NCBI GenBank assembly: GCA_965240325.2
Contig: OZ251235.1
Span: forward strand, 62,001-126,000
DNA length: 64,000 nt
Source of the DNA: Rebecca billardiae RCC1528
Lineage: Eukaryota > Protista > Haptophyta
Reading direction: 5' to 3'
The notes below the pieces were generated by a model. It saw only the letters and a list, made by a program, of their open reading frames with translations. It had not been told where the DNA came from and did not search any database. Below are positions 21,727-61,009 of the stretch, piece by piece; the first letter of the stretch is position 1, and every line of letters begins with the position of its first letter. Position numbers and translations under genes: made by a program.

Positions 21727-24700
21727 ATGGGGGGCCGGGGCCATGGCCAGACTCCCCGCTTCCTAGGCGCCAACTTCGGCTCGCCGCCGCAGGTTGCGCC
21801 GAATGGCGGCGATCGGTGTTCGCCGCTGCCGCCATCGCAGCCGGGCGCATCACCGCACAACAGCCGGCGCGCACCACGGGCGAGCAACCTGCTCTTCTCT
21901 CGCGCCCGGGCGCACGACACGCGGCTTGTGATCGTGAGCGATCCTGGGCCGGACCCGGATGACGTCAAGGTGCGCGCTGTTGCCTGACGCGCGGCGATGC
22001 TGCGACGCGCCTCGCGCGCGGTGCGAACTGTGTGCTGCGTCGCAGCTCGGGCACGGCGGCGCCACGGGGCGCGGGCGCGCACCGCCTGGCACGGCACGGC
22101 TGCGCGCTGAGCTTGCATGCGCGCCCATCCTCCCGCGCGCGCAGGCCATCCTCGTCGCCGCCATCCTGCACAAGCAGGACCAGCTCGCGCTCAACGCCGT
22201 GATCGCAAACGGAGGCGGACAGGCGCGAGCGCGCGCGCGGCTCGCGCGGTGCATCCTGGACCACGTGGGCGCGCGCGACGTGCCCGTGGGCGTGGGCTCG
22301 GGCGGGCGGGACTACTCCGCCCAGCCGCACGAGTACAACATCGCCGGCTACCAGGAGGTCGAGGACAGCCGGCTGGTGGACGGGCGGGTGCTGCTGATGT
22401 CGATGCTCAAGCAGGTGCACACACGCGCGCGCGCGCACGCGCGCTGGGCGCGGGGCGCGGAGCGCGGGGCGTGGGGCGTAGGCCATGGGGCGTGGGATGC
22501 GGCGCGCCCGCGCACGGGGCGCTTGCGGCGTGCACGCGGCGTGCACGCGACGCGGTGCTCGCGCGCTGTGGTGCGCACGGGCAGCGCCGGCGCGCCGCCC
22601 GTCCTGCAGCTCTGGGGGAGGGCCGATCCGAGGGGGTCAAGGCCCGCCTCGCTCCTCGCCCTCGTGAGCAGCACGGCACAGGGGCGCAGGGGCGCGTGGC
22701 GCGAAGCGGCGCGCTCGACTGCTCGCTCACCGCTCTGGCCTGCGCGTACGTGCGCGCGCGCGCGCCGCCCGCCCGCAGGCCTCGCTGCGCTCGCTCACCT
22801 TTGTCTGTATCTCGTCGCTGCGAGATCTGGCGGACGCGATGCTGGCGGAGCCCGAGCTGGTCGTGTCCAAGGTCCGGGAGGTCGCGGTGATGGGCGGGCT
22901 GGAGCAGGACTCGGCGAGCGGCGAGTGGCTGCCGGACACGTCGGTGAACAACGGTGCGTGCGCGCCGTGGCGGGGGCGGGCCGGGGCCTCGCCTCCGCTC
23001 ACGCGCGCGCGCCCCGCCTCCGTGCGCCGCGCGCAGGCCTGGACGCCGAGGCGGCGCGCACCGTGTACGCCTTCTGCTTCCAGCGCGGCGTGCCGCTGCG
23101 GGTGGTCAGCCGCTTTGCGGTGCCGATGCTGCCGATGCAGGTGCGGTGGGCCCCGCGCGGCTGCGCGCCTCGCGCGACTGCGCGCCTCGCGTGGCGCACG
23201 GCCCACGCCGCACTCGCCCTGACGGCGCCTCACGCCGCGCGTGTGCGCGCCCGCGCGCCGCGCCGCGCCGCTCTCACGCTCGCGCACGCAGCTGGCCAAG
23301 TCGTTCGCCGACCGCACCAACTGCCCGGTGATGGCGTACCTGGCGAACGCGCAGTTCCTCGGGCTCGAGGGCCTCTGGCAGAAGCTGTGCGAGGGCAAGC
23401 TGCCCGCGCGCTGCACCAAGCAGTGGTACTTCGAGACCTTCTGCGGCGTGGACGCAGACCAGTTTGGCGCCAAGGGCCTCGAGGCGCTCGACGCCTCGGC
23501 GGACATCGTCACGCTGCTCAATGGCTTCGTCAAGCCGTACGACGGTGCGAGCGCGCGCCAGCGGCGGCGGCGCGCGCGCGCGCGCGCGCCGGCGGCGGCA
23601 GCGCCGGCGCTCACACCGCGCCCTCGCGCGCCCTCGCGCGCGCGCGCCGCGTTTGCGCCGCGCCCGCCGGTCTGCGGGCGCCTGGCTCGGGCAGTGGTGG
23701 CCCTGATGGCGGTGCTGCCGCTCACACGGCTCTGCTTCCCGCCCGCGCTCGAGGTCGAGCGCGGCGGCGCGACGCACCTGCTGTACGTGCTCGCCGAGCA
23801 CGCGCCCGACGTGTGGCACGTCCTCAAGCTGCTGCGCGAGACCTACCACGAGGTGGTGATTGCGACGAGCGGGCACGGAGAGGAGGGCACGGCCTCGCTC
23901 GCCGCCTCGAGGCTGCGCGGCGGGCTCACCAGCTCGCAGTGGGCGCCAAAGTCGCCCAAGGGCGGCGGTGCCCCGAGCTCGGCGCGCGAGCTGGCGCGCA
24001 GCTCGCTCCACCGCAGCACCGACCTCTTCGGCGGCGGCTCGCGCCGCTCGTCCGACTCGTCCGTGCGCGACAGCCACGCGGTCGAGCCGATGTCGCCCGC
24101 GGGCGCGCGCGCCTTCCCGGCCGTGCGCGCCAAGGCGGGCGGCGAGCCGATGGGCCAGTACGACGTGGTCGTGCTGCTGCGCCACGCGCTCGACGAGGCG
24201 TCGCGCCGGCAGCGCGCGTCCGCGCAGCCCATCGTGCTCTGCGGCATGGCGCTCGTCGCGGCGTGCGTGCTCGTCTCGATCATCGACGCGCTGATCCACC
24301 CGCGCGCCGACCGCTCGCGTGACGAGGACGCGGCGGTGCGCATGCGGCAGGGCGCGTACAAGGCGGCCGCGTCGCTCTCGACGATCTGCATGCTGCTCGG
24401 CGTGCAGCCCTTCTCCGCGCAGCGACGCACGCACCTGCTCGTCGCGCTCTTCGCCATGTGCTTCTTCGCCGCGCTCGCGCTCATCAAGTGGCTCGGCCTG
24501 CTGGTCGGGATCGGCGGCGGCTGGTTCAAGACGCGCACGGCCGCGGGCGCGGAGGCGGTGCTCGTGCTCACCGCGCTCCAGTCGGCGCTGCCCATCGCCA
24601 TCCTGGGCTGGGCGGTGGTGCGCCACCTGCGTCAGTCGCGCTGGATCCTGATCGCCACGTGGCACTCGTGCGGCGTGCTCGCGCTCTGCGCCGGCGCGCT

Positions 24701-25225
24701 CGACGTGACGCTCGCCGTCGACGAGTGCGTGCACGAAGGCTGCGGCGCGCACCCGGGCTTTGTCGCGCCGATGCTCGTGCTCGGCGCGTGGAACGTGGCG
24801 ATGGGCTTCCTGCTGCTGCACCCGCGGCTGCGGCTGAAGGGGCACGCGTGGCTCTCGCGCGCGCTCTCGACCAGCGGCCGCTACTCGCCGCTCGCGCCGT
24901 TGATAGGCTTCGGCCAGACCGACCCCAACCCCGAGCAGATTGTGGAGCGCGCGTGGCGGATGTGCAACCCCGTCACGCTCGACGGCGGCGCGTTCCGCCG
25001 CCTCTCCTTCTCGCCCACGCCCGTCGGCACCGGGCTGCAGAGCGGCCGCGCGCGGCCGCTCAACGGCAGCCCGCAGCACACGAGCCCGCACGGGGCGCGG
25101 CTGTCCGGCCCCGCCGTCGTCGTCGAGCGCGCCGAGCTCTCGGGCGCCGACTCTGACACGTGCTCCGTGCCCGAGCGCAGGCACTCGGTCGAGCTGGGCG
25201 GGTACCAGCTCGCAGTGCCGCCCTT

Positions 25226-25279
<54 letters not shown>

Positions 25280-26144
25280 GAACTCGCAGAGTAGCGGCGG
25301 CTCGCGCTCGCCCATCCGCGCCGCCATGCAGCGCATCAGCGCGGACATGCTCGGCCGCCGCCCCGCCTCGGAGTGCGGGCTCGCGCGCGGCACGTCCGGC
25401 AGCTCGGCCGCACCCAGCAGCGTCGAGGGCAACAGCGGGCGCAACATCGACCGCGCCGCGCCGCTGCCCGAGGAGGACGAGGACGAGGACATCGACTTTT
25501 ACATCGTGCACTCGTGGCGGGACGAGCCGTCGGCCAAGCGCGGCGCGCTCGTGCACTGGGTGCGCGCGTTCGCCGCGGAGCACGGCCGCTCGCCCGTCGT
25601 GTGGCTCGACGCGCTCTGCGTGGACGCGCAGACGCGCGCGGCCGAGGCGCCGGGCGAGCAGCTCGCGCACCTGCCCGTCCGCCTCGCGCGCGCCAGCCAG
25701 CTGCTCGTGCTCCTCGGCCCGACGGTGGTCGACCGGCTCTGGTGCGTCGCCGAGCTGTACGTCTGGCGCGCGATGGGCGGCCAGATGGAGGACGTCGTCG
25801 TGCTGCCGATCGGCGCGCCCGGCGACTCGCGCGCGACCGCGTCGGTGATTGCCTCCGTCGACGCCTTCCACGTGATGCACTGCGCCGCGACGCGCGAGGA
25901 GGACTCGCTGCGCATCGTGCACGCCGTCGAGCTCGCGGGCGTGTCGCGCGTGAACGACGTGATCCGCGCCTTTTTGCCCGCCGTGCGCGCCGCGTGCGCC
26001 CAGATGGAGAACGGCGGCACGCCCAACGTGGGCTCGCCGGGCAGGTTGGTCAGCAGCGACAGCGGCGAGAACGCGGGGCCGCCGCTCGTCGACCCGGCAC
26101 GCTCGGCGGAGGAGGGCCGCGCGGGAAGCGCGGCGGCGAGCTGA
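21727..26144 (+). CDS. Nucleoside-hydrolase-like / 6TM / TIR-like fusion protein, copy A (exons 21727-21969, 22145-22414, 22779-22953, 23037-23140, 23292-23544, 23695-26144)
   Basis: The spliced product has IVSDPGPDPDDVK, VPVGVG, ISSLRD, VAVMGG, SVNNGLD and KPYD (IU-NH-like), then about 6 hydrophobic helices, then DFYIVHSW..VWLDALC..LLVLLGP...RLWCVAEL (TIR-like). All five introns are GT-AG and phase-compatible. Confidence 0.85.
25227..25280 (+). repeat. (GGC)n coding repeat, about 18 Gly
   Basis: Directly visible in the linker before the TIR-like domain. Confidence 0.95.
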
Positions 26145-26868
26145 CGAGTCACGCTTCGCGATGGCCCCGCGGAGGGGCGGACACAGAATGGACGTTGAAC
26201 GTTCGGCCTACGGGACGACGACCTGTCCGCTGTCGTCACCTGTCCTGAATCTGATGCAGCACTGATCACAGACTGATGCTGACACACTAGATAGTAGATG
26301 ACGATATATATATGATGATTGAGACGCGCGACGACTATATATATAAGCATCAGCAGTATAGTTGCATGTGCACCACCGTCCGCCGGGCCCAGCCGCCGCC
26401 ACGCGGCGCTGTGGCACCTCTGTGTCCTCTGACTGCTAGACTGATATGCATGCATGAGTCAGTATTGTGATGCTGAGCAGAGCGCGCTGTCCCGCAGTGA
26501 CGTAAACTCCCGCGACCGGACGGCGATGATGATGTATCGCCGGCGGCCGGTGACCGTCCGTACGTAGATCCGGCTGCCGCGCGGGGACTCGTCATCAGAT
26601 AGTCAGCAGCATCGTCATACCTCATCGACTTGCGGTGGCGCCGCAACGGCGAACGGGCTGCACACGTCCTGCTCGCCCAGCACCGCCGTCGCCTCCGGCC
26701 CGGCGAAATCGCCGCGCGGCCGAAATCTCAAATAGCGGCAGCATGGGCGCGCGCGCGATGCTCGGTGGTTCGCGCAGCGCTGCCGGCCTCAGACCGGCCC
26801 AGGGCCAGCGGGCACGGCAAGTACCGCGTGATCACGGCCCATCAAACCTGCCCCGGCCTCGGCCCGTC

Positions 26869-56066: not shown

Positions 56067-59000
56067 CTATGCCTCCTCGCCCGCCTTGCCGGCCGAGGCT
56101 CCCCCTTCCTCGAGGTCGATCAGCTCGGCGCGCCCGCGCCCGCCTCCGTTCGCCCCAGCGCCGTTGGACTTGAGCTTGAGCTTGGGCCTGGGCCGCGGCG
56201 GCGACGAGGCCCCGGCGCCTTCCTCGCCCCGGCTCGCGCGCAGCGGGCGGATGAACTTGCTGACGGGCGAGCGGAGCACAGACCTGCCGGACTCGGCGCC
56301 ACCGCCGCCGCCGGCGCCCGAGCCCCGCGCCGCCGCCGCCGCCGTCGCCTCCGCCGCCGCCCTGTCCTGCTGCTGGCGGGCGCGCGCCGCTGCGGCTCTG
56401 ACGAGGGGCACGAGCGCTCGCACCTCGCGGTTGATGCGGCGCTCGGTCGCGAGCTCGACGGCCAGCTTGAGCCGGCGCGTCACCTCCGCCGCGTGGTCCA
56501 GCTTGGTGGACAGGCGGGCGCGCGCCGCCCACCACGCGCCGCCGCCGCCGAGCGCGCCGCCGCCGCGCTCGCTGCTCGCCCAGCTCCCGCGCGAGCGCGG
56601 GGTGCTGGCACTGGCGCGCTTGGCGACGCTCTCGCCGACGCGCGCGGGCAGGCTGGGCTCGGACGCCGCGTCCGCCACGTGGAACGCGTCAAAGGCGGCC
56701 GCCACGTCGCGATTCGCGTGCGCCACCGCCGCGCCGCTCCACCGGCCCGCGCTGCCGCGCACGCGCTCGCGCGTGCTCTCGCGCCGAGAGTCGCACCCGC
56801 ACGAGGCGGCGGACTCGCGCGGCGTGGGCTCGGGCGGCGGCGCGACCACCTCGACCTCGATGGCGTCTGCGCGCCCGCCCAGCGCGTGCCACGTGTGCAC
56901 CTCGATCAGCGCGTGCAGCTTGCGCGTGAGCGAGGTGCTGGCCAGCACGAGCACGCCGCGGCAGAGCGCGAGCCTGCACGGCGTGTGCTCGAGCGCGGAC
57001 ACGCGCGACAGCCACGCGCCGTTGCCCAGCGCGTCGATCCACACGGTGGGGCGGCGGCCGTGCTGCCGCTCGAAGCGCTGGGCGAAGAGGCGCAGCGCGT
57101 CCGCGCGCGCGCTCGCCGGGTCCGCGTCGGAGTGCACCACGTAGTAGTCGGCGGGCGCGGGCGTCTCGAGCGCGCTCGACGCGGCCGTGAGCTGCCCCGC
57201 GCTCGGGTAGCTGTTGAGCGACTCGCTCTGCTGCGCGCTCGAGGCGGCGCCGGTGCTCGCGCGCGTGAGCTCGTCGGCGAGTGCGCTCGGCGCGGCCAGC
57301 GCGCCCTCCGCGCCGCTCGTCGACCGGCGCGGCTCGCCGCTGCGCGCGCGCGCCGCGCGCGCCGCGACGCAAGCGTGCCACGGAGGCAAGGCGGCGGCGC
57401 CGCCGCTCGCGGCCGCAGCGCCCGCCCAGGGTGCCGCGCCTCGGGGCCGGCCAGGCTCGTCCGCGAAGCCGCCGCCGCCGCCGCCCGCGCTCGCGCGCGT
57501 GCGCTGCTCGGGCGCGGGCTCCCGCCCGACGCGCCACAGGCCGTCGAAGCTCGAGCGCGCCTGCCGCCGGTCGGGCGCGCCGCCCGCGGCGGCGGCCATG
57601 CTGAGCGCGCTGTTCGCCCGGCCGGACCGCCCAAACCGGGCGGGCATGGGCGCGGAGAGCTGGCCGGCGAGCGGCGGCGGCAGGAGCGGGTCGGCCGCGC
57701 TGGCGCGCGCGCCGCCCGCCCGCCCTGCGCCGCCGCCCGCGCCCACGCCGCCAAAGCACGCGCGCTGCGTCGGCTGGTTCGCCCACCAGCGCCAGTGCGA
57801 GCCCGACACGAGGGCGGCCATGCGCGTCGCGTCGTCGTGGCTGGAGGCGTCCAGCAGCGCACTCGGACGTTTGGGCGGCGAGCCGAAGGCGCCGGGCTGG
57901 CTGGGCCGGGCGGCGATGCGCAGGTCGAGGGCCGCGTCGTCCGCACCGACGGCGACCACGCTCTCCGCAGCGCTCGAGCGCTCGGACGCGCGAGCGGCGG
58001 CGCGCGCGCGCGCGCCGTCCGCGCCGCCCGGCGCGAGCGCGGCCGGCGCGAGCGGTTGCGTGCCGCCGAGCGCTCCGAGCACGGAGTCCTCGAGGGGGAC
58101 GGGGAGGAAGGCGCGCGCTGCCTCGGCGACGAGCTCGGCGGGCTGGCGCTCGGCGCGTGCGCTGCCGAAGCCGAGCAGGGGCGCGAGCGCGACGATGTGC
58201 TCTGGCCGCGCCGCCTCATGCGCGTGCGCGCCCGCGCGCGCGCGAGGCGGCTGCTGCGGCTGCGGCTGACCGCTGGCCGTGCCGCCCGCGCCTGCGGCGG
58301 CGTCCGCGGGCCGCGGGCCGCCGGCTGCGGCCGTCGCCGTCGGCCAGGGCGCGGCGTGCGCCCTTTGGCCTGCTGCCGCGGGCAGCAGGTCGGGCATCGC
58401 CCCCGGCTGCGCCGCCGGGCGCACGGTGCCCCGCTTCGCGCGCCCCTGGCCGCCCGGCGCGGGCGGCCACTGGCGGCCGCGCGGCGCGGCGCGCGCGATC
58501 GGCGCGAGCACGGCGCGCGAGAGAGCAGTCTGCAGGCGCATGCGCCACGCGGGCGTGAGGGCCGCGCAGCCGAGCGCGGCGTGCAGCGCGCCGATCAGCG
58601 CGAGCACCGCCGCCTCGCCCTGCCCGAGCTCCGTCGTCGCCACGTGCAGCCCCGCCAGCGCGCCGAGGCCGAGGCCGAACGCACCGACCGCGCTCCACGC
58701 GCCCCGCAGCAGCGCGCGCGCCGAGCGCCAGTGCCGCAGCGCCGCGCCTGCCGCGAGGAGCGCGAGCGCGCCGAGCACGGCGAGGGCGAGCACCGCGCGC
58801 GCGAGGCGTGCGCGCGGCTCGGGCCCCGCCTCCACGCGCGTCGCCGCCGTGCTCAGCACCACCGCCTTCCCGAGCACGAGCAGCGCGACGTAGCACAGAC
58901 TGACGGCGGCGATGCCGAGCGCGCCGCGCCGCGCGGCCGGCAGCAGCGCGTCCGCCGGGAAGATTCCGAGAAGTGTCAGGTGCGCGCCGACGGCGAGGAG

Positions 59001-61009
59001 CAGGAGGTAGCCGAGCATGCGCGGCGCGAGCTCGGCCTCCGCGTGCCGCGCCGCCGCGCCGCGCCACGCCGCGCCCAGCCCCGGCTCCGCCGCCGTCGCG
59101 ACCAGCGCGCCGAGCATCAGCAAGACACCCGCGGCCGACGCGGCGCGCGTCGCGCGGTGCTGCTGCACGTGAGCGGTGCCGAGCGCGCCGTCCAGCAGCT
59201 CGCGCGTCTCGTCGAGCGAGAGCGGCGGGCTGCGCTCGGAGACGCCGCTGCTCCGCCGCAGCGTCTCGAGGTGCCACGACGACTGCCGCTCGAGCACGCC
59301 CGAGACCCGCCCGTCCTCCGAGCCATCCGCGTGCGAGCGGCGCGCGTTGCCGCCGCCGCAGACCGGGCTCGCGCCGCCGCCGCCGCAGCGCGCGAGCAAG
59401 GCGAGCGGCGAGCCGGCGAGCGGGCCGCCGCCGAGCCGGCGGTGTGCGCCGTGCTTGGCGCGCTTCCCGCCCACGCCGCCGACCCCGCCGCTCCCGCCGC
59501 CGCCCACGCCGCGCGAGAGCACCCGCCGCCCCCGCCGCGCCTCCCTCTGCGCGCGCGCCACGTCGTGCAGCGTGTCGCGCACGAGCTCGAGCACGAGCGA
59601 GGGGTCGAGCGCGTGCTCCGCGCGCATCAGCAGCCGGTGCTGCACGCCGCCGACGCGCACGACGGCGGCGCGCGCCGCGCCGCGCGAGACGAAGACCGAG
59701 CTCGAGCCGGGCAGCGCCATCACCAGCGCCGCCACCTGGTACGCCTTCACCAGCCCGTTGAGATGCTCGCTCACGTCGTCGGCCGCGCCCAGCCGCGCGT
59801 ACTCGCCGCTCAGGTACTCGGCGGTGGAGACGCCGCAGAAGGTGGTGAAGAACCAGAGCTTCGTGTTGCGCGCGGGGAGCTCGCCCGCGCACAGCCGCTG
59901 CCACAGCCCGTTCAGCGCCGCCAGCTGCGCCCTCGCCAGGTACTCGATCAGCGACGAGTCGAGGTGCGCAGCGAACGATCTCGCCAGCTGCGCGCGCGCG
60001 CGCGCGCACGCGCGCGAGGGCAGCGGCGGTCGGTGCGGGCGCGCGCCGCGGGCCGGCGGCTCGATCGCCCGCCGTCGCAGGCGCTCGGGCTGCGCAGGCA
60101 TCCACGGCCGTGCGGGCCCCCACGCACATGCCCACGTGCGCACACACGGGGCCACGCACGGGGCCGCCCGCCCTCCCGAGGGCAGCACGCGCGCGCACAC
60201 ACACGCACACACGCACACACACACACACACGCGCGCACACACACGCACACACGCACACACGCGCACATGCACACACACACACGCGCGCGCGCACCTGCAT
60301 CGGCAGCATTGGCACCGCGTCTCGGCCGATCACGCTCATGCCCACGCGGTGCTCGAAGCACCAGTCGTACGTCGCGGTGGCGGCGGCGCGGTCCTTCTCG
60401 TTGTTGTTCGAGCTGTCCGCCGTCCAGCCGTACTGCCCCGCCGAGCGCGCCTTGAGACCGCCCATCACGGAGACGGAGTGAGTCCGGCTCACCACGAGCT
60501 CGGTGCTCTCGCGCGCAAACGACGCAAAGTCGGTCATGGCGGAGGCGAGCACCCAGCGCACCGAGCGCGGCGGCGCGGCGCGGAGCACGGCCTCGAGCAC
60601 GCTCGCCGCGCTCTCCAAACGGCGCCCGTCCACCTTGTCGTACCCGTCGAGCGCAAACTCGTGTGGCGCGACTGCGTGCGCCTCGCCGCGCGCGCCGATC
60701 CCGACCGGGATCTCCGGCTCGCCGACGAGGTCGAGCACGCGGCGCGCGAGCGTGGCGCGTTGCTCGGGCCGAGCGCTGCCGTTACACACGACCGCGGAGA
60801 GCTCGATCTCTTTCTTCTTGTGCAGCATCGCTGCGACGAGGATGCACTTGACAGCATCCGGGTCAGGGCCTGCGCAGCGCCGCGTGACGCGCGTGGTGAG
60901 CGGCAGCGGGGTGCTCGGAGCACCCGCGGCGCAGAAGGCGGTGGCACGCACCAGGGTCGTTGATGATGATGATCCGCGGCTTCAGCCGCGGCTCGAAGAG
61001 CAACGCCAT
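56067..61009 (-). CDS. Nucleoside-hydrolase-like / 6TM / TIR-like fusion protein, copy B (exons 61009-60952, 60869-60295, 59987-56067; alternative start 61093)
   Basis: IIINDPGPDPDAVK, IPVGIG, ASAMTD, VSVMGG, SNNNEKD and KAYQ, then about 6 TM, then DYYVVHS..VWIDALG..VLVLAS....KLHALIEV. Collinear with copy A and shares the MLPMQ|LA intron position. Confidence 0.85.
60196..60282. repeat. (CA)n/(CG)n compound microsatellite inside an intron
   Basis: Directly visible within intron 60294-59988. Confidence 0.9.

Follow-up and report, generated by a model that had tools for sequence, protein, structure and literature searches.

HopQ1-like proteins, to which the hydrolase domain considered here is related, are defined by the motif DXXXDXDD, where canonical nucleoside hydrolases carry DXDXXXDD (PMC11685791), and have already been reported in algae (PMC10944878). 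By homology to the Crithidia enzyme, D108 of HopQ1 belongs to a set of three aspartates that coordinate Ca2+, and the double mutant D107A_D108A loses both Ca2+ binding and stability (PMC11685791). XopQ is inactive as D120N, its D120N/D399N form is the dead version used in plants, and a preprint reports that the protein cleaves 2'cADPR, a product of TIR domains; this hydrolysis is not known outside bacterial homologs of XopQ (10.64898/2026.06.15.732069). Here, we analyzed 64,000 nucleotides of Rebecca billardiae RCC1528 (contig OZ251235.1, positions 62,001 to 126,000; hereafter the window), in which two paralogous genes, copy A and copy B, are each predicted to join a nucleoside hydrolase (NH) domain, a block of membrane helices, and a TIR-fold domain in one protein. 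Copy A is canonical; copy B, the subject of this work, has lost residues of its hydrolase site. On balance, and with modest confidence, we read copy B as an intact, probably functional, and fast-evolving member of a pavlovophyte membrane-protein family, with a hydrolase of its own that would be non-catalytic, and not as the dedicated partner of copy A.

The NH domain of copy B, which is read from the reverse strand, is distributed over three exons. Exon 1 (60952–61009) encodes MALLFEPRLKPRIIIINDP and the first base of a Gly codon, comprising the start of the domain, strand beta-1, and the first Asp of the Ca2+ motif. Exon 2 (60295–60869) encodes the N-terminal half from PDPDAVK to PMLPMQ, with Ala in place of the last Asp of DXXXDXDD, and the opening part of exon 3 (59541–59987) encodes the C-terminal half, which opens with LARSF and includes VKAYQV, with Gln in place of the Asp equivalent to XopQ D399. 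Exon 2 matches Pfam PF01156 (IU_nuc_hydro) at 39.8 bits (cutoff 34.2). Among solved structures, those of XopQ (7jlu, 4kl0, and 4p5f) are the best matches to the family and to each half of the copy B domain (E = 1e-23 for the family and 3e-06 for copy B exon 2). HMMER alignment sets PDPDAV of copy B on KDPDDV of XopQ (7jlu indices 132–137), with the Ala at index 136, and KAYQV on NLYDP, with the Gln at index 412. The second motif Asp (index 133) and the Asp of YD (index 412) are 279 residues apart in 7jlu, matching the spacing of D120 and D399 (10.64898/2026.06.15.732069); the D120 equivalent is therefore kept in copy B, and Gln occupies the D399 equivalent.

The DXXXDXDD motif of copy B is incomplete, reading D-P-G-P-D-P-D-A with Ala at the HopQ1 D108 equivalent (copy A: DPGPDPDD), and the C-terminal Ca2+-site Asp is absent (AYQ, compared to LYD in XopQ and PYD in the family). 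Three of the four motif aspartates are retained, including the D120 equivalent and the first Asp (the proposed catalytic base), as is the NN ribose-site motif. The original prediction, made from the letters of the window, had described the replacements DPDD to DPDA and PYD to AYQ as changes of putative Ca2+/ribose-binding aspartates. Alignment to the solved XopQ-type hydrolases bears this out, placing both substitutions on Ca2+-site aspartates equivalent to HopQ1 D108 and XopQ D399. By this residue equivalence, two single-residue changes take away two metal ligands of the copy B hydrolase.

Across the family, 69 NH positions are conserved at 80% or more. Copy A keeps all of them (69/69), and copy B keeps 57 of the 66 covered by its exons, with a family median of 93% and a 10th percentile of 79%. 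Of the nine positions at which copy B departs from the family, four show conservative exchanges (V/I, L/V, I/V, G/A), and the Asp ligands themselves account for two more. Given this retention, the degenerate site is not a sign of general decay. Our best reading, which we infer from the residues, is that the copy B hydrolase would no longer bind Ca2+ normally and would be catalytically dead, that is, a pseudo-hydrolase. The original prediction went further and suggested that copy B binds a nucleoside rather than cleaving it. This appears doubtful: the residues lost are metal ligands while the proposed base is kept, which is the opposite of the pattern expected for a substrate-trapping sensor. 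In IU-type nucleoside hydrolases, Ca2+ also holds the ribose hydroxyls, so that loss of metal ligands would likely impair ligand binding as well.

The nearest protein relatives found in a first search come from Diacronema lutheri, a pavlovophyte, and from marine transcriptomes (31–49% identity). We drew motif counts from 161 public relatives, labelled here by P-numbers (P0003, P0109, and so on), taking the proteins that cover a given motif as the denominator. The N-terminal motif is intact in 96/111 relatives and the C-terminal Asp in 70/78, which argues that the substitutions of copy B are not ordinary variation. Both motifs are covered in 65 relatives, of which 53 have kept the two intact, six have lost both, and six have lost one. 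The hydrolase site has been lost repeatedly, in about one family member in six, and the site-degenerate relatives P0072, P0109, P0127, and P0157 are long proteins with the full architecture. Degenerate members sit on longer tip branches (median 1.02 versus 0.53; Mann-Whitney p = 0.013, on points that are not phylogenetically independent). Copy B follows this trend, with tips of 1.13 in the C-terminal half of the NH domain (median 0.58), 0.81 in the N-terminal half (0.53), and 1.24 in the TIR part (1.03); the tips of copy A measure 0.22–0.75. An exhaustive search with copy B exon 2 returned 360 relatives, none above 50% identity, and a scan of metagenomes for copy B relatives found none.

Selection on a degenerate member could be estimated in D. 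lutheri. There, a doubly degenerate gene lies 8 kb from the copy A-like gene KFE25_006283 (P0003), on the same strand and with five genes between the two. It carries the motifs CPGESGDA, VRPYSL, and SLWAVALLHAW, without the TIR Glu, and P0109, its ortholog in another organism, has the same degenerate motifs. Comparing this pair gave a dN/dS (ratio of nonsynonymous to synonymous substitution rates) of 0.41 overall, with 0.27 for the NH domain, 0.40 for the membrane block, and 0.42 for the TIR part, at a dS of ~0.6–0.7. Non-catalytic members of the family can thus be maintained by selection, and by comparison with this gene the same maintenance is plausible for copy B.

Next to the degenerate gene lies a DUF3119 gene; this is so in D. 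lutheri, in the organism of P0109, and in a close strain represented by a Logan contig, amounting to a conserved micro-synteny. Two D. lutheri gene models, KFE25_006283 (P0003) and its 933-aa degenerate neighbour, are N-terminally truncated, with NH coding sequence continuing upstream in the same open reading frame (ORF); in a Logan contig that is near-identical, the neighbour is present as an intronless gene of 1252 aa. These observations concern the stretches L003 (10619–14413, reverse strand), L004 (3890–7648, reverse strand), and L001 (9338–14443). We considered whether copy B is the ortholog of the D. lutheri degenerate neighbour or of P0109 and rejected this: the neighbour has 34% identity to copy B, compared to 47–49% for intact members, and is placed in a separate clade with 98–99% support in the SH-like approximate likelihood ratio test (SH-aLRT).

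The copy B coding sequence runs from an ATG at 61009 to a TAG at 56069–56067 on the reverse strand (61009–56067 as a whole) and comprises 1517 codons without a single stop or frameshift. Its first exon resembles the N-termini of family relatives, which start in the same way. Intron 1 (60870–60951; 82 nt, phase 1) interrupts the Gly codon of DPG/PDPDA, the slash marking the splice position, and intron 2 (59988–60294; 307 nt, phase 0) lies at MLPMQ/LA; both are GT..AG. Intron 2 opens with a GT/GC dinucleotide microsatellite of ~110 nt. Exon 3 (59987–56067) begins with LARSF, ends with the TAG, and closes in a low-complexity C-terminal tail (56067–56348, including the stop codon). The window is eukaryotic DNA of ~70% GC. 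Throughout the 3.9 kb of exon 3, GC content at third codon positions (GC3) is 0.88–1.00 (mean 0.95), compared to 0.46–0.88 at second positions (GC2), in every 150-nt window, and the uniformity of this signal argues against hidden introns. It also holds through the linkers and through two low-complexity inserts of ~30 and ~55 aa in the TIR part (56600–56850, reverse strand), which set copy B apart from all relatives; given their coding GC3, these inserts are probably translated loops and not introns. We looked for stops, frameshifts, broken splice sites, and loss of periodicity as marks of a pseudogene and found none in copy B.

Downstream of the NH domain, hydropathy (the only basis for this feature) predicts about six hydrophobic segments, of which one is borderline; in copy B the block occupies 58530–59160 (about six predicted membrane helices by the Kyte-Doolittle scale). 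It is followed by the motif LAPLLGFG...P...V..A.R...PV.L (58077–58187), which is found in many relatives. In single sequences, neither the membrane block nor the linkers nor the TIR part had a Pfam match, and an Atlas feature search with the membrane block gave no usable match. The TIR_2 family scored copy A at E = 0.15 (13 bits, below the cutoff of 28) and matched 4/28 members at E = 0.012 or weaker. A family profile searched against the PDB gave a similarly faint signal, reaching the TIR domains of TLR15/TLR2 and SIGIRR at E ~0.04 and aligning the family's ..C..ELY to WCQYELY of the Toll-like receptors (TLRs).

Structure prediction points to the same fold. The TIR part of copy A was modelled at a predicted local distance difference test (pLDDT) score of 93.8 and that of copy B at 82.3, with the low stretches of the latter coinciding with its two inserts. 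The models matched solved structures at Z = 10.6 (A) and 10.5 (B) over 140–141 residues with a root-mean-square deviation (rmsd) of 3.6 Å, and the top 50 matches were all TIR domains of plant, animal, or bacterial origin (RPPT, RPP1, RUN1, MyD88, AbTir, and SARM1 for copy A). In copy B, the TIR-fold domain (56349–57188) contains DYYVVHS and KLHALIEVHTW, as indicated by the AlphaFold2 model (pLDDT 82, Z 10.5) and by alignment. A putative catalytic Glu is present in both copies (RLWCVAELY in A, KLHALIEVH in B) and is aligned by the profile to the Glu of the TLR motif WCQYELY, an assignment made at the sequence level only. Thus, as originally described, copy B keeps the Glu and loses the preceding Trp-Cys (KLHALIE versus RLWCVAE); it shows further losses in the LDxLCxD and GP motifs. 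Whether its TIR domain would cleave NAD is uncertain, with the Glu kept but the Trp-Cys lost.

The states of the two sites were compared in a TIR alignment of 28 proteins, 27 of which were scored for both (P0005 has no hydrolase motifs). An intact hydrolase site occurs together with the TIR Glu in 19 proteins and without it in four; a degenerate site occurs with the Glu in two (copy B and P0072) and without it in three. The two sites tend to be lost jointly, not in complementary fashion (odds ratio 7; Fisher p = 0.08). The combination found in copy B, DPDA and AYQ with the TIR Glu kept, is its own among the relatives. One relative, P0055 (947 aa), has the reverse of the usual domain order, with a TIR-like domain (260–439) N-terminal of the XopQ-like hydrolase (488–679).

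Recurrent loss of the hydrolase site and purifying selection on one degenerate member together indicate that copy B is most likely a maintained non-catalytic paralog. The family layout would place a XopQ/HopQ1-like NH domain in the cytosol, followed by about six membrane helices and a TIR-fold domain that is again cytosolic, and copy B could serve as a scaffold, a regulator, or an assembly subunit in the TIR/nucleotide signalling of its family. Several observations pull the other way. Gln can still ligate Ca2+, and with the first Asp and the D120 equivalent kept, residual or altered activity is possible. The TIR model of copy B leans on the family alignment and is not independent of that of copy A. 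No ortholog of copy B was found, in a setting where word searches with the long exon were swamped by low-complexity words (one match each), and a look-up of RNA runs listed none. An ORF of 1320 aa runs antisense to copy B (56493–60455, forward strand), most likely as a by-product of 80% GC, which makes ORF length and integrity weak evidence at such a composition. Finally, an intact and a degenerate gene within 8 kb of each other, as in D. lutheri, would arise with a probability of ~2.5% under random placement, which speaks somewhat for non-random linkage.

The first alternative is that copy B is decaying or silent, either as a young pseudogene or as an unexpressed, drifting paralog, with the losses in both enzymatic domains (the Ca2+ site of the NH domain; Trp-Cys, LDxLCxD, and GP in the TIR part) being signs of decay. 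Its long branches, its large low-complexity expansions and two TIR inserts, and the lack of an ortholog among the 360 relatives would all fit, and at 80% GC the length of the ORF says little. Set against this are the 1517 open codons with two GT..AG introns, a strong and uniform codon periodicity (GC3 0.95), and the retained membrane helices, LAPLLGFG motif, and TIR core. Moreover, copy B keeps 86% of the highly conserved NH positions at an overall identity of 40–49%, its misses are concentrated on site residues, and purifying selection is seen in a degenerate relative of comparable kind. We therefore regard decay or silencing as rather unlikely; an old pseudogene in particular is unlikely in view of the fold conservation, the GC3 signal, and the introns.

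Alternatively, copy B might still be an enzyme, a specialised isoenzyme with a remodelled metal site (a Gln ligand and three of the four motif aspartates) and perhaps another substrate. It keeps the first Asp and the equivalent of D120, a residue whose single mutation kills XopQ, as well as the NN motif and a well-conserved fold, and XopQ itself long passed for inactive, before its true substrate came to light. However, HopQ1 D107A_D108A loses Ca2+ binding and stability, the D399 equivalent is Asp in 70/78 relatives, and relatives tend to lose both motifs together (six both, six one), which fits release from catalytic constraint. A persisting enzymatic function is, in our judgement, unlikely.

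A more speculative possibility is that the metal-less NH domain of copy B acts as a receptor for a TIR-made nucleotide, by analogy with the lipase-like pseudoenzymes EDS1-PAD4 of plants, and upon binding controls its own membrane block or TIR domain, either alone or mixed with catalytic paralogs such as copy A. If so, the four combinations of hydrolase and TIR-Glu states would be parts of a self-contained algal network of signal makers, breakers, and sensors. We hold this to be decidedly unlikely.

As to the maintained non-catalytic paralog that we favour, its relation to copy A remains to be described. Copy A (21727–26147, forward strand) has all NH site residues and RLWCVAELY intact and comprises six exons (21727–21969, 22145–22414, 22779–22955, 23037–23140, 23292–23544, and 23695–26144, followed by the stop codon), with an uncertain start codon at 21727. 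Its fifth intron (23545–23694) is exactly 150 nt long, in frame, and stop-free, so that the ORF reads through; the intron position, VKPYD/V, is common to the D. lutheri P0002 and P0004 loci and is absent from copy B. Hidden Markov model (HMM) scans in six frames identified only copies A and B in the window. Paralogy is supported by three BLASTP blocks, in the N-terminal part of the NH domain (41% identity over 90 aa, E = 4e-19), its C-terminal part (34%, E = 1e-25), and the TIR-like part (36% over 109 aa, E = 3e-15). The copies diverge at the sites discussed above, with INDPGPDPDAVK in copy B versus VSDPGPDPDDVK in copy A, VKAYQV versus VKPYD/V, and KLHALIEVHTW versus RLWCVAELYVW.

Much of the original description of the two genes thus stands. 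A diverged paralog does lie on the opposite strand about 30 kb from copy A, with a complete coding sequence at 56067–61009, and the domain order is the same in both (NH, hydrophobic block, LAPL motif, TIR-fold domain). The splice positions also agree with the earlier account of one common and one different intron: both genes have an intron at MLPMQ/LA, whereas the first introns differ, lying inside the Gly codon of DPG/PDPDA in copy B and after DPDDVK in copy A. The post-membrane motif, LAPL(I/L)GFG with the tail P...V..A.R...PV.L, is present in both copies, but the spacer after GFG is five residues in A and seven in B, not four as had been written. On the proposed old duplication giving rise to A and B, the trees of the NH C-terminal half and the TIR part point in different directions. 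The former allow a sisterhood of A and B (p = 0.72 in the approximately unbiased test (p-AU), with the constrained tree better than a quick free search), and the latter nearly reject it (p-AU = 0.059). The shared MLPMQ/LA intron is missing at five loci of D. lutheri, whose genome is intron-poor.

The original prediction further proposed that copies A and B form an enzyme/pseudoenzyme pair, in which the dead NH domain of copy B senses a nucleoside or TIR-made nucleotide and signals through or with the competent copy A. A fully canonical and a site-degenerate copy within 30 kb, the TIR Glu retained in copy B, the analogous 8-kb neighbourhood in D. lutheri, the maintenance of degenerate members by selection, and the usually oligomeric nature of TIR domains and NH enzymes are all compatible with this. 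Paired receptor genes, however, are typically head to head, whereas copies A (ending at 26147, forward strand) and B (ending at 56067, reverse strand) are convergent, with 3' ends 29.9 kb apart and a WD40 ORF between them. Our searches found ten D. lutheri members, each on its own contig, and one of these contigs also carries an eleventh, the degenerate neighbour of P0003; scattered paralogs, which the prediction itself had named as a reason to consider the linkage coincidental, are thus what we observe. At four D. lutheri loci out of five (P0002, P0004, P0016, and P0017), the family gene stands alone within 10 kb, and the neighbour at the remaining locus is not an ortholog of copy B, differing in identity and clade. 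At least one pair within 35 kb would be expected by chance with a probability of 4–53% (10–30 genes in 40–75 Mb), and local duplication explains the D. lutheri clustering without functional pairing. A tblastx comparison of the D. lutheri loci with the window brought up nothing beyond family genes and WD40 matches of a generic kind, and no microsynteny. Chance, or what remains of a local duplication, best accounts for the closeness of A and B, and we consider it unlikely that copy B serves A as a dedicated partner. With two convergent genes of a large and mostly dispersed family, canonical ligand binding likely impaired in copy B, and hydrolase-site loss that goes with TIR Glu loss instead of complementing it, a linked sensor-executor pair is very unlikely and should not be carried forward on present evidence.

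A full-text literature search found no paper joining a TIR domain, a nucleoside hydrolase, and algae in this sense. Since XopQ-type hydrolases destroy the TIR product 2'cADPR according to the preprint cited above, a eukaryotic membrane protein that unites such a hydrolase with a TIR domain would be a natural candidate for an algal nucleotide-signalling or immune module. Copy B adds that the family yields members in which the hydrolase site appears selectively dismantled and the fold kept, which provides testable contrasts for the role of each domain, both between the two copies and among the family's live and dead combinations.

Compared with known systems, the hydrolase is closest to XopQ and HopQ1 (HopQ1-like protein (HLP) clan, PF01156), its nearest solved relatives, with which the family has DXXXDXDD and the C-terminal YD in common. 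Those proteins are soluble, secreted bacterial effectors, whereas here the domain stands at the N-terminal end of a eukaryotic protein that is predicted to cross the membrane several times and ends in TIR; copy B in addition lacks the equivalents of HopQ1 D108 and XopQ D399, and the Tyr of XopQ RAYNN is Val in the family and Asn in copy B. The TIR part has the fold of known TIR domains (RPP1/RUN1/RPS4, SARM1, AbTir, MyD88, SPARTA, and ThsB; Z 10.3–10.6 over 120–146 residues) and the betaA DxYVVHS and alphaC (W)C..EL signatures. It differs in falling below Pfam thresholds, in a HET-like WLDxLCxD block, and in an extra C-terminal helical part, and copy B differs further in having His-Ala for Trp-Cys and two inserts. 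Paired receptors such as RRS1/RPS4 and the pseudoenzymes EDS1-PAD4 provide precedents for a degenerate paralog beside a competent one and for a dead fold serving as a small-molecule receptor. In contrast to these, A and B are neither adjacent nor head to head, and copy B has lost metal- and ribose-holding residues and not only a base. The closest likeness is to the pavlovophyte relatives of the same NH-membrane-TIR layout (D. lutheri KFE25_ proteins and MMETSP transcripts), with which copies A and B share domain order, motifs, and an intron position. The fusion of NH domain, membrane block, and TIR domain is a new arrangement of known parts, to which copy B adds a site-degenerate form.

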